A stretch of DNA of 64,000 nt from Botryllus schlosseri (taxonomy: Eukaryota). The notes beneath the pieces were generated by a model. The model worked only from the letters and a program-made list of their open reading frames with translations, searched no databases and was not told the origin of the DNA. The stretch lies in the NCBI GenBank assembly GCA_051294905.1, contig CM119384.1, forward strand, positions 5,394,001 to 5,458,000, read 5' to 3'. Positions within the stretch are counted from its first letter, which is position 1. Every line of letters starts with the position of its first letter. This document shows, one piece after another, positions 10,041-13,000 of the stretch. A program made the position numbers and the translations under genes.

Positions 10041-13000
10041 CTAAGTGAAGAAGTACTGTAACTCCTCTTCCTCTTTGTCGCGTGCGTCCTTCTTTTTGCT
10101 TTCCTTTTGCTTCCTTTGAGGCGGTTCGGATCTGAACACAAGTCTCTTCCCGCCCTGTAATAGACGAGTGTCATCCTCAAATTTCCACATTGTTTCGAAA
10201 ATAGATCTATTCACCGTAATTATTATAATGTAACGAAATTATATATTTAAATATTTCTTCCGTTCCAGCCTAATCGGCGCTGCCTTGGTCCTACGCTGAC
10301 CGTCGTACTGGCCGCCTGAAACGCCGATAAGAGTAGTGGTCGCATATTCATCCGCGTTCGCGTTACTATGCGATTTGGGGGTAGGGGCGGCCGAACATTG
10401 TAATAAAATGCCCGAATCACCATCTGCTGACCAACACAAGTCTGTTTTCTAAGGTATGATGATAACGACAGAAGTGGTAATTAACGCCGTGCCTCCACTT
10501 TTTAGGCGTGCTCTTAGTCAGCTTTGCCTACTAGCATGACTTACTCAGTGATTTTTTAAAACTTTCACTTGAAGTAGTTTGGACATGACTTGGTAATAAC
10601 CAGAAGTGGTTATCGTTGGTACTGAAGCAGAAGGGTAAGGAGCAAATTTCAACTAAGTATTCTAGGCCTAATTATGCTTAGAATCAGGTATTTCTATAAC
10701 TAGAAATCCCTGCTTAGAATACTGAAAACTCTCAAGTAGAAGTAGAACCATTTTAGGAATTAGTGTAAGTAGGCAGGAAGTACTTTTTTACTGACCACCT
10801 ATAAAAATAGCTAGTTCTAGTTCTACTTGTAATTCTACTGTAATTATTACGGGATATTTCCACTTCCAATTAAGTAGCAAGACTTGACCGCCTCTGAAAA
10901 ACGTAAATGAAAATGTCAGTATGTTCTACTAAAACATTCGCAAACCTTTTTCTTCGGATCCGCCTTGGCTCTCTCCAACGCCTTACGGACTCTCTCCTCT
11001 TGATGCGCCCGTTGCGCCGCCAATTTCTCTTCCCTCAGTCTCATCCTTCTCTCCTTTTCTTTCGCTTTCTCAGCCGCGTCCACCAGCTCTTGCGGCATGA
11101 CCTCGATGCTTTCGAACAGCTCCTCCAGTTTATTTTCGATCGTCGTCAGCATCTGTAAGGTGCTGATGTTGGCTTCGTTTTCGCCGATGCACGCCCTGAA
11201 TGGGAAGGTTTCAAGATCTCGAAAGAGTATGGAAACGTAAGATCTCATAGGTGATCTTTCAACATTTGATGAAACTGAAATGTAGCCTATGATGATATGC
11301 CAAATTTGAGGCTTGACAGAGAGATTAAGAAATTTGGATATATGTTGTAAGTTGTAACGACACATGAGTAAGGATAGTGTGGAAAGTCTGAATTTGTACC
11401 TTTTATGCGACCACAAAGCAAAAAATGCCAGTTATTCACCACATTAAAGATAAGTTGCTAGTTTTTCGACTGTACCTATTTCATTGCATTTTGTGACAAT
11501 GCTGTGTGTTGATCACGAATTCACAGAAATTTCATTTCCACTAACGTGACTAGCCTTGCACTACGTCTTTTAGATGCTGCGATATGACCTAATGAGGTTT
11601 GAAGGCTTCCACGGTGGGAAAGGCAATTACAATTCTCAATGATATAAGTTTTAATGGAAAGCGGTGTAGAATTTCAGTGCTTTAAAAAACATCTCTCACA
11701 ATTCGACTCCGATCATTGTAACTAATCCTACTATTTTATCTCAACTCTGTATTCGATTACAATGAAAAAACGGACAAATTATATATTAGAGGAACTTAAC
11801 TTTCATCGTTCTGTCTGTTGGTGACAAATATTGGAATCGAGTCACTGTGAATTTCTACTACATGATATTTATATCATTTATGGAAATGACTATGATTATT
11901 TGAAGAGCTTCTTGGAGGTACAGAACTTCAATATACAATTGAATAGTATATTCATATTGAAATAATCCCGAATATTTTTGGCTGACATTCGTCAGGGGTA
12001 ATCGTCAGCAAGTAGTAGAGAATTGGAAAGAACACTGTATATCAACAATTGTATCGCAAAATATGACGTCACCAGCATGAAATTGCGAATGAGAGAGCGT
12101 TCAATGTACTATTTTCAGGTGGTACACAAACTCCTTTTGTTGACAGAGCTTGGGTTGGTGTATTTTGATAAAAGTCGACTACAAGGCACACAAATGGAAG
12201 AGTGAACGGCCCCTCCCAACGACGCAAAATCTGTCGTTTCCAATTCTCTACCAGTTGCTGACGATTACCCCTGATGAGTGTCAGCCGAAAATATTCGGGT
12301 TTATTTCAATATGAATATTATGATGAATATAATATGAATACTATGATTATTATATATCTTTTGAAAACCAAAATTTATGGTGGATGGAATCCTGCTCATT
12401 CGCCCTGGCTAGTCAAAAAGATCCACTGCAAAAAACTTCCCAATCGTATTACTTGAAAACTTCTTCCACTTTTCTGTGGAGCGATTTCAACATTTTCTCC
12501 TGATCCTTCGCCTTGAATTCGCCGTACGAGAACATTTTGGACTTCAATTCCAGATCGTCAGCTTTTTCTTCCTCTCGCCTTATCGTGCCTTTCAGAATAC
12601 CGATTTGCGATTTCAATGCCCCGGTTTCACGGTCTCTGTAAAAGGGGGAGATGGAAAATTTGTTGTTATGCTCACGAGCTACGAAGGTGGATAGAATCGA
12701 AGTACTTTTATTTATAAAGATTACTTTAGTAGGTTTTACATGCTTACACATTTTACTCCAGTGCAGAGGTGGTCAGTAACGAAGTACTCTGACTTTTCAG
12801 AAGTACTCAAGTAGGTTTTTACCTACTTGTACTACTTACTTACGTAGCTATGTTCTTGGAGTATTCCCACTTCTGCTTAAAAATATTTTAGTATGGAAAA
12901 AACTTTCGAAACTATTATGCAGCATTGTAACCAAGTCACAAGGCTCAGAGTCACATCTCACTTTTATAGTTTGACTCAACTCAAGTCGATTCATTTTTAA

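Follow-up and report, generated by a model that had tools for sequence, protein, structure and literature searches.

The association of Penelope-like elements (PLEs) with minimal type I hammerhead ribozymes, a helix III of the dimer type, inverted copies and tails is established. The minimal hammerheads described by Cervera and De la Pena (2014, PMC4209133) lie near the 3' end of endonuclease-bearing (EN+) PLEs, in the pseudo-long terminal repeat (pLTR) region. These motifs belong to type I and have a helix I of 4-6 base pairs (bp), a conserved G10.1-C11.1 pair and a palindromic helix III that implies action as a dimer; some families carry a U3-A8 variant, and motif pairs on opposite strands occur 100-700 bp apart. 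The same properties are found in a PLE family of the tunicate Botryllus schlosseri and its relatives, analyzed here from a stretch of 64,000 nucleotides (nt) (GenBank assembly GCA_051294905.1, contig CM119384.1, positions 5,394,001 to 5,458,000, forward strand; hereafter the window, whose own numbering is used throughout). At 11901-12339 (insertion A) lies what is probably an old, dead, non-autonomous insertion of a canonical EN+ PLE, with two-strand-primed arms arranged head to head and a pseudoknotted type I hammerhead module in each. The published PLE consensus has a hairpin helix II of 6-8 bp and an unpaired base between A9 and G10.1, whereas here neither is present and G10.1 directly follows A9. 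The 9-nt A9-G12 spacer of the window module is too short for the consensus hairpin and would form a 6-bp helix with an upstream strand instead. This pseudoknotted form of stem II seems not to have been described before; no paper on the architecture was found in the searchable literature, whose coverage stops short of Lunse et al. 2017 and the Craig 2021 supplement.

PLE hammerheads are described in a review as being without tertiary contacts between stems I and II (PMC6155905). For a natural type II hammerhead reported in 2011 (PMC3088659, Fig. 4), in which stem II is 1 bp long and a 6-bp pseudoknot is present, activity is fast and pseudoknot-dependent (kobs > 1.2 per min at 0.5 mM Mg2+). The window module resembles it in its single-pair stem II and in the 6-bp pseudoknot that would hold stems I and II. 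However, that ribozyme is prokaryotic or phage-associated, its pseudoknot runs from loop I to the 3' tail past stem II, and its stem III is normal, whereas the window module is of type I, pairs loop II with the 5' tail, has no intramolecular stem III and belongs to a eukaryotic retrotransposon. The non-circularly permuted hammerheads of types SGC, CSG and GCS (Eckert 2023, PMC10085705) also join one strand of stem II to one strand of stem I through a short linker of ~3-4 nt and have pseudoknotted core helices, but the window module keeps the order CUGANGA, GAAA, cleavage site and is an ordinary type I.

The sequence at 11901-12339 is one integration event, because the exact 12-mer ACTATGATTATT borders the whole unit as a single target-site duplication (TSD) around both arms. 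Insertion A consists of two 5'-truncated PLE copies placed head to head, a minus arm of 340 nt and a plus arm of 109 nt:

11889-11900: left TSD ACTATGATTATT, an exact 12-mer that recurs at 12340-12351
11901-12240, minus strand: minus arm, with the last 45 endonuclease codons, the stop, ~200 nt of 3' untranslated region (3'UTR) and the complete 3' end
11901-11938, minus strand: optional PLE tail of ~38 nt, with the element sense end ...UUCUGUACCUCCAAGAAGCUCUUCA; its reverse complement is the GTACAGAACTTC... repeat
11966-12009, minus strand: dead hammerhead module of the minus arm, carrying G12A and G10.1A and an altered outermost base of helix I, according to the alignment of copies within the window
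12231-12339, plus strand: inverted plus arm, 3'UTR only, with a tail that is partial at most; it halts at about the start of the tail
12340-12351: right TSD, the second copy of the 12-mer

The coding part of the minus arm occupies 12238-12104, with its stop at 12103-12101. The arm has 85% identity to 48758-49092 (blastn) and an 89% match to residues 192-236 of the related protein P0001 (tblastn). Its last ~38 nt are an optional tail, because L001, a metagenome copy of the same family, stops at ...ACTATTCAA without them. The plus arm matches query positions 734-838 (blastn) and is listed as inverted repeat I18. The arms are 85% complementary between 11931-12034 and 12232-12335, and the whole of insertion A, as a read-through RNA, has an extended hairpin as its computed fold (-181.7 kcal/mol, z = -14.9). 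In any such RNA, the intact hammerhead at 12267-12300 would be buried, according to this folding, in a ~100-bp hairpin with its inverted partner. The initial annotation had singled out the inverted second copy, and the copy is real, but nothing about it is peculiar to this locus: PLE insertions ordinarily take this form, and the 12-bp TSD shows that this one was made in a single event (PMC8557442, PMC11167929). The plus copy of the hammerhead is intact, as had been read, whereas that of the minus arm is corrected to dead, having lost G12 and G10.1 (58.9 bits with our covariance model R1).

The arrangement probably arose through cleavage of both target strands by the GIY-YIG enzyme, each strand then serving to prime reverse transcription. 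Priming would take place at or near the 3' end of the element RNA, once at a distal site (with tail) and once at a proximal site (without tail), and two incomplete cDNAs of ~340 and ~109 nt, joined head to head, would leave inverted 3' ends within one 12-bp TSD. LINE-1 twin priming likewise uses both target strands as primers and leaves inverted, 5'-truncated structures inside a single TSD. It inverts an upstream segment beside a non-duplicated 3' segment, whereas in the window insertion both arms begin at the same 3' end and the sequence is present twice. The proposal of two-strand priming draws on the Anolis carolinensis Poseidon protein PAc (Frangieh 2024, PMC11167929), which cleaves and extends both strands and begins reverse transcription at two internal sites that define an optional tail of 30-40 nt. 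PAc has in common with the window family a reverse transcriptase (RT) with a C-terminal GIY-YIG endonuclease, a hammerhead near the unit boundary and an optional tail, and its two-strand activity would explain the inverted arms. It differs in family and host, and its hammerhead overlaps the start of the open reading frame (ORF). An inverted 5'-truncated copy beside the element and a tail of 30-40 bp are both described for PLEs (Craig 2021, PMC8557442; tails also in PMC11167929).

Minus-strand open frames rich in coiled coil lie on both sides of insertion A, at 10916-11170 (-) and 12449-12700 (-), and a Pfam search gave them no confident identity. Insertion A may sit in an intron of a coiled-coil gene; if it does, the dead hammerhead is sense and the intact one antisense to that gene.

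The family relationship of the element is read from its endonuclease. A 101-residue C-terminal piece has 1196 protein matches among 1.8 billion representatives, the best being P0001 (87% identity). P0001 is 86% identical to the window ORF and matches the window by tblastn at 12238-12104 and 49538-48948, both on the minus strand. At these two loci the AT-rich repeat follows the end of a GIY-YIG ORF (stops at 12101-12103 and 48945-48947), as the initial annotation had held, and its assignment to the PLE 3' tail was correct: the repeat GTACAGAACTTC... is the reverse complement of the element 3' end and occurs eight times at <=3 mismatches, with 0 expected. The Pfam GIY-YIG domain (PF01541) is present in 9/12 of the longer relatives (best E 2.6e-6). 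The motif ...R..QH...AIGKHL...LE is readable in both P0001 and the window ORF, and the pattern GIY...YIG...R...H...E, with added Cys and His residues, can be read directly. The relative P0122 has RVT_1 at residues 31-104 and a C-terminal part that aligns with the window endonuclease piece; P0290 (666 aa) has RVT_1 and HTH_animal, and further longer relatives carry RVT_1 upstream of the endonuclease. The element is, as far as these relatives indicate, a canonical EN+ PLE with an RT followed by a C-terminal GIY-YIG endonuclease, in agreement with the original assignment.

Within the 64-kb window, tblastn detected endonuclease C-terminal fragments and no RT-coding sequence. Pfam searches with the two halves of the window ORF gave no match, and a sequence search of the PDB with the endonuclease was empty. 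A fold search with an AlphaFold model (predicted local distance difference test, pLDDT, 72.5) returned weak matches to the GIY-YIG domain of UvrC (E 0.13, target-normalised template-modelling score 0.52); the domain was settled by the Pfam matches at family level. A CxxC cluster between the RT and the GIY motif is not visible in P0122 or P0001, and its absence would favour a placement with Penelope/Poseidon. Neither the DNA motif nor the protein profile found anything in scans of viral contigs.

The hammerhead in the plus arm reads ACCC-CUGAUGA-GUGUCAGCC-GAAA-AUAUUC-GGGU, with C17 where the initial annotation had placed it:

12267-12300, plus strand: intact type I hammerhead
12267-12270 and 12297-12300, plus strand: helix I
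12271-12277, plus strand: CUGAUGA box
12278 and 12286, plus strand: G10.1 and C11.1
12280-12285, plus strand: strand P' (GUCAGC)
12287-12290, plus strand: GAAA box
12290-12295, plus strand: helix III palindrome AAUAUU
12296, plus strand: C17
12257-12262, plus strand: pseudoknot strand P (GCUGAC), 4 nt 5' of helix I and complementary to P'

Cleavage is predicted after C17, 31 nt before the tail-less 3' end. The motif scores 74 bits with R1, but it is itself in the seed of that model. A strict descriptor, CTGANGAG-N7-CGAAA-N4-TH, has three matches in the 64 kb (12271+, 35165+ and 48847-) and none in 100 dinucleotide-preserving shuffles. Helix I begins ~100 nt after the ORF stop at both endonuclease loci.

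The same module is present 100-200 nt 3' of the endonuclease stop in nearly all related loci that were fetched. Their 3' flanks came from exact-protein look-up (L001-L004, L085-L087 and L089-L092) or from a profile scan of metagenome contigs (L005-L084); 20 modules were aligned, and 10 family representatives were drawn from the alignment. G5, A6, A9, C11.1, G12, A13, A14 and A15.1 are invariant in these representatives and U4 is kept in 9/10, while all four bases occur at N7. Mean identity is 0.95 in the core columns versus 0.55 in the rest (p = 5e-7), and the families that share this nearly invariant core are only ~40-55% identical in their endonucleases. In the 20-row alignment the C3-G8 pair covaries (C-G 11, U.G 6, U-A 3), and five of the six pairs of helix I change on both sides. 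G10.1 and C11.1 are paired in 18/19 modules. Helix III has no intramolecular form; its palindrome is kept, with one covarying pair, and the centre shifts from GC to UA or CG with palindromy retained. The palindrome is AAUAUU in the window family and AAGCUU, AAAGCUUU, AACGUU or AGGCCU in relatives. A core that is nearly invariant across PLE families and the covariation of C3-G8 and helix I bear out the earlier description, a minimal hammerhead of type I whose helix III is a palindrome. The block order is C-G-S in every copy, that of type I, and a non-circularly permuted form was accordingly rejected. The upstream CUGACGA at 12258-12264 was rejected as a catalytic box: position 17 would be G, there would be no helix II, and the box is unconserved, its equivalent being CUGACC in the 48847 copy and UGACGC in L007.

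The largest related family (family B, L008-L084; contigs Ga0210059, JGI24021J15306 and others) has mostly U3.G8 (UUGAAGA) and in a minority C3-G8, and three other loci (L002, L005 and L085) have a U3-A8 core. This looks like a pathway from C-G through U.G to U-A within one PLE clade. A U3-A8 core has already been reported for Schistosoma PLEs (PMC4209133).

The A9-G12 spacer has 9 nt (8-10 nt in relatives): a G, one nucleotide, six nucleotides and a C. It had been annotated as "G(UGUCAGC)C", a one-pair helix II closed by a 7-nt loop. That reading does not hold, as six of the loop bases pair with the upstream 6-mer P. All 6/6 P/P' pairs show compensatory change on both sides in the 20-row alignment, with 93% of the cells paired. 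The observed values were never attained in 500 shuffles, and controls with the structure shifted by 1-3 columns were 36-41% paired. The following P/P' combinations occur:

P/P' pair 1: GCUGAC / GUCAGC
P/P' pair 2: UCUGAC / GUCAGA
P/P' pair 3: UGACGC / GCGUCA
P/P' pair 4: UCCGAC / GUCGGA
P/P' pair 5: UCUAGC / GCUAGA
P/P' pair 6: CCGUGU / AUACGG
P/P' pair 7: UCCAGU / GUUGGA
P/P' pair 8: GACAC / GUGUC

Because the six "loop" bases covary with the upstream 6-mer, stem II is best modeled as a single G-C pair (G10.1-C11.1) plus a 6-bp pseudoknot with the upstream strand. P/P' has a constant geometry, with a helix of 6 bp, a single crossing nucleotide following G10.1 and none before C11.1. Across families P lies 7-11 nt from C3 (mode 8), a spacing that is preserved because the linker shortens as helix I lengthens. 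P/P' probably stacks on G10.1-C11.1, which would give the equivalent of a 7-bp stem II. The deep groove of the 6-bp helix would be crossed by the one nucleotide that follows G10.1, as is familiar from H-type pseudoknots, and the linker would clamp stem II to stem I. Each 3' end would thus bear a 44-nt type I module with a 4-bp helix I, a CUGANGA...GAAA core and a pseudoknotted stem II, in which the pseudoknot would replace the usual long stem II and tie stem I to stem II. Since helix III is no more than a 6-nt palindrome, it could form only between two copies. It is quite possible, if not quite probable, that the hammerhead of a PLE subclade, found in the window host and in several hosts of marine and other metagenomes, has the 5' strand of its stem II relocated upstream of helix I, so that stem II exists only as an H-type pseudoknot and is clamped to stem I by a linker of 1-5 nt. 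A CUGAY/GUCAG hairpin that dominates the minimum free energy (MFE) folds was rejected, as it is not kept where P' differs (L007, L087); it is a by-product of the resemblance of P to the core.

Several points weigh against the reading as a functional pseudoknotted ribozyme. Rfam hammerhead models match nowhere in the whole window, at gathering thresholds or at E <= 10, so that the covariance search proposed in the initial annotation detects none of the copies; on 111 nt the best Rfam model is RAGATH-1-hammerhead (12.5 bits, E = 7.5, cut-off 56.3). In ViennaRNA the MFE structure consists of two competing hairpins (-8.5 kcal/mol for the 34-nt and -10.9 for the 44-nt sequence), and the nested hammerhead pairs alone come to about +0.5 kcal/mol; P/P' alone has -7.4 to -8.1 kcal/mol. 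The self-duplex of AAUAUU is worth -0.2 kcal/mol, compared with -4.3 for the AAGCUU of other families, and the U3.G8 of the largest related family may be suboptimal. Published PLE hammerheads cleave poorly and slowly in vitro, and the ribozyme is dispensable for PLE insertion in vitro (PMC4209133, PMC11167929). A full-length master of the window's own PLE family was not seen. The modules in relatives were found partly with a regular expression for the core, an ascertainment bias, although the loci themselves were picked by protein similarity. Sub-threshold matches to Rfam microRNA models were also obtained and dismissed as merely inverted repeats.

An unlikely but credible alternative is that the module serves mainly as a structured RNA handle of the 3'UTR, for example in binding or positioning the RT, and that its core is kept without self-cleavage mattering in vivo. 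The two points at which the RT is inferred to start lie 31-69 nt downstream of the module, which is followed on its 3' side by a strongly conserved terminal box, and the hammerhead fold is thermodynamically weak. Mutation of the hammerhead leaves insertion in vitro unaffected, RNA-seq reads from Anolis do not terminate at the cut site (PMC11167929), and Naiad PLEs thrive without hammerheads (PMC8557442). However, it is precisely the catalytic nucleotides that are invariant while N7 is free, and together with the covariation of C3-G8 to U3-A8 this would be hard to account for by protein binding alone.

We consider it distinctly unlikely that P/P' acts outside the active ribozyme, in a folding switch whose alternative "off" hairpin would lock away the 5' half of the core. 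As a plain hairpin P/P' is stable (-7.4 kcal/mol) and would enclose the 5' strand of helix I and the CUGANGA box, and ViennaRNA cannot score P/P' jointly with helix I. The constant geometry and the 7-11 nt (mode 8) taken up by linker and helix I fit a three-dimensional constraint within one fold, and a one-pair stem II without other support would be unusual. In addition, a 1-bp stem II with a 6-bp pseudoknot has an active precedent (PMC3088659).

It is very improbable that the inverted arrangement at 11901-12339 represents two independent insertions, or an assembly or foldback artefact. PLEs do tend to insert close together, and palindromes are error-prone in assemblies (PMC8557442), but one exact 12-bp TSD surrounds the whole unit, the arms are of unequal length and just 85% complementary, and the window contains seven pairs of this kind, differing in their junctions, with more in unrelated metagenome contigs. 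A purely accidental likeness of the string to a hammerhead, within an AT-rich repeat, as the lack of an Rfam match and the preference of MFE folds for other hairpins might suggest, is extremely improbable and effectively refuted by covariation in three elements, besides the core invariance and the descriptor count against shuffles.

The pseudoknotted hammerhead insertion is one of many PLE remnants here. The window holds 19 PLE fragments, 18 found by blastn and one (15141-15202) by R1, which belong to ~11 insertions, all of them 5'-truncated. About 13 fragments reach the terminal tail, so the earlier count of "at least 14" tail copies was roughly right. In addition to insertion A, the copies are as follows:

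48753-49543, minus strand: longest copy, with the C-terminal 200 codons of the endonuclease (49538-48948), then a tailed 3'UTR
49544-49790, plus strand: inverted partner of the longest copy, endonuclease coding sequence alone (inverted repeat I3)
35040-35229: inverted pair B; plus arm with the full core at 35165-35190, minus arm with G12A
14816-14984, plus strand: lone copy, truncated at its 5' end, with G12A and a mismatch in helix I
15141-15318, plus strand: decayed copy (blastn 15251-15313; R1 match 15141-15202, E = 0.001)
26817-26906, minus strand: copy cut off inside the hammerhead, without the CUGANGA box
38411-38580: inverted pair C, both modules mutated
51684-51798: inverted pair F, tails only left
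57805-58007: inverted pair D, G8A in one arm and G12A in the other
59307-59535: inverted pair E, with a candidate 10-bp TSD TTCAGCAAAG at 59300 and 59533

The longest copy has an in-frame stop at 49256-49254 and its ORF stop at 48947-48945, and its hammerhead module at 48818-48861 (-) has all features intact, with U at H17. A near-perfect palindrome at 49302-49785 (233-nt arms, 97%) consists of endonuclease coding sequence and explains sub-threshold matches to the Rfam model MIR4239 on both strands at 49484-49603. In the plus arm of pair B the helix III palindrome is broken (AAGAUU) and there is one mismatch in P. Insertion A and six others make up the seven inverted pairs of the window, each with different junction points. 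Copies of one non-autonomous composite element were rejected as their source because the junctions differ in every pair, which points to independent truncations. Head-to-head pairs are also present in relatives elsewhere (L056, L064, L081, L085, L086), and L092 shows a partial tandem plus an inversion; no direct tandem was seen within the 64-kb window. L092, from another sample, carries at 3936-7217 a very young and complex PLE insertion with a 666-aa RT-endonuclease ORF. Its ORF is preceded by inverted segments, 99.8-100% identical, with the partial tandem on the opposite strand, and the called ORF start is partly read out of the inverted arm.

A terminal box, (A/G)(A/G)UUCUGUACC(A/U)CCAA..., is found 60-130 nt 3' of the hammerhead in families whose endonucleases are only 40-55% identical. 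The shorter form TTCTGTACC..CCAA is kept in 12/17 representative related loci. The terminal box stands at the window 3' ends at 11901-11925, 26817-26841, 35040-35064 and 48753-48777, and in loci L002, L003, L005, L007, L011, L086, L087, L090 and L091. The box UUCUGUACC..CCAA may be a signal for recognition or initiation by the PLE RT or endonuclease.

The window copies are old relics and do not reflect recent activity. The suggestion of a "recently active" lineage is not supported by the window, in which all copies are 5'-truncated, the flanks have diverged by ~12%, there is an in-frame stop and no RT is present. The ribozyme module is covered by 13 copies, of which 3/13 keep the full core. 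Core losses recur at the three CpG dinucleotides of the consensus: G12 is changed to A in six copies and G8 to A in three, and C17 is also changed to U. CpG sites of the module are 26% diverged, a decay that suggests germline methylation in the host. At non-CpG positions the core is 2.4% diverged from consensus (3/126) versus 12.1% in the flanks (Fisher p = 3e-4); the core is thus more conserved than its surroundings across the copies, contrary to the refuting condition set in the initial annotation.

Other genes and repeats lie among the PLE copies. An intronless ORF for a DHHC palmitoyltransferase (ZDHHC2/15/20-like) at 26936-28030, with a likely start near 27103, lies 30 nt from the PLE fragment at 26817-26906. 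Ascidians provide its best named relatives, with 62% identity in Phallusia, 60% in Clavelina and 59% in Ciona, and identity reaches 78-81% in further assemblies. A PLE-made retrocopy was rejected as its origin; the adjacency is coincidental, because the related gene in L088 is also intronless with no PLE near, and homology is limited to coding sequence. A string resembling a PLE end lies at 28098-28125. Foldback repeats, similar to miniature inverted-repeat transposable elements, are present at 36766-37361, 46378-47005 and 41467-42052, with inverted arms of 150-270 nt that are 92-98% complementary, and they account for the other sub-threshold microRNA-model matches (MIR8562, MIR9481, MIR2600). 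A second dispersed repeat family, unrelated to the PLE and present in both orientations, carries the palindromic motif GAGTCATATGACTC; its copies are at:

13029-13346
39069-39176
41172-41289
45370-45891
47650-47901
52934-53437
62785-63148

Clusters of a GC-rich motif, CGCGGGCCGCA, at 48500-48545 and 50040-50095 flank the region of the longest PLE copy and could be the ends of another mobile element that received the PLE.

Insertion A provides a clean example of a PLE insertion with a single TSD in a tunicate host. The pseudoknot would account for the failure of standard hammerhead descriptors and Rfam models to find these motifs, and it is a possible reason for the persistence of a one-pair stem II. 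Minimal constructs without the upstream 6-mer should be inactive, and negative assays on trimmed PLE hammerheads could therefore mislead. Compensatory mutants of P/P' would be a simple means of learning if the hammerheads of PLEs work as ribozymes or are passengers. In active masters, the module would most likely process multimeric or read-through PLE transcripts as a dimer. If the pseudoknotted stem II is real, it would contradict the general view that PLE hammerheads lack tertiary stabilizers, and these elements would carry a potentially fast ribozyme whose sole switch is dimerization through the palindromic helix III.

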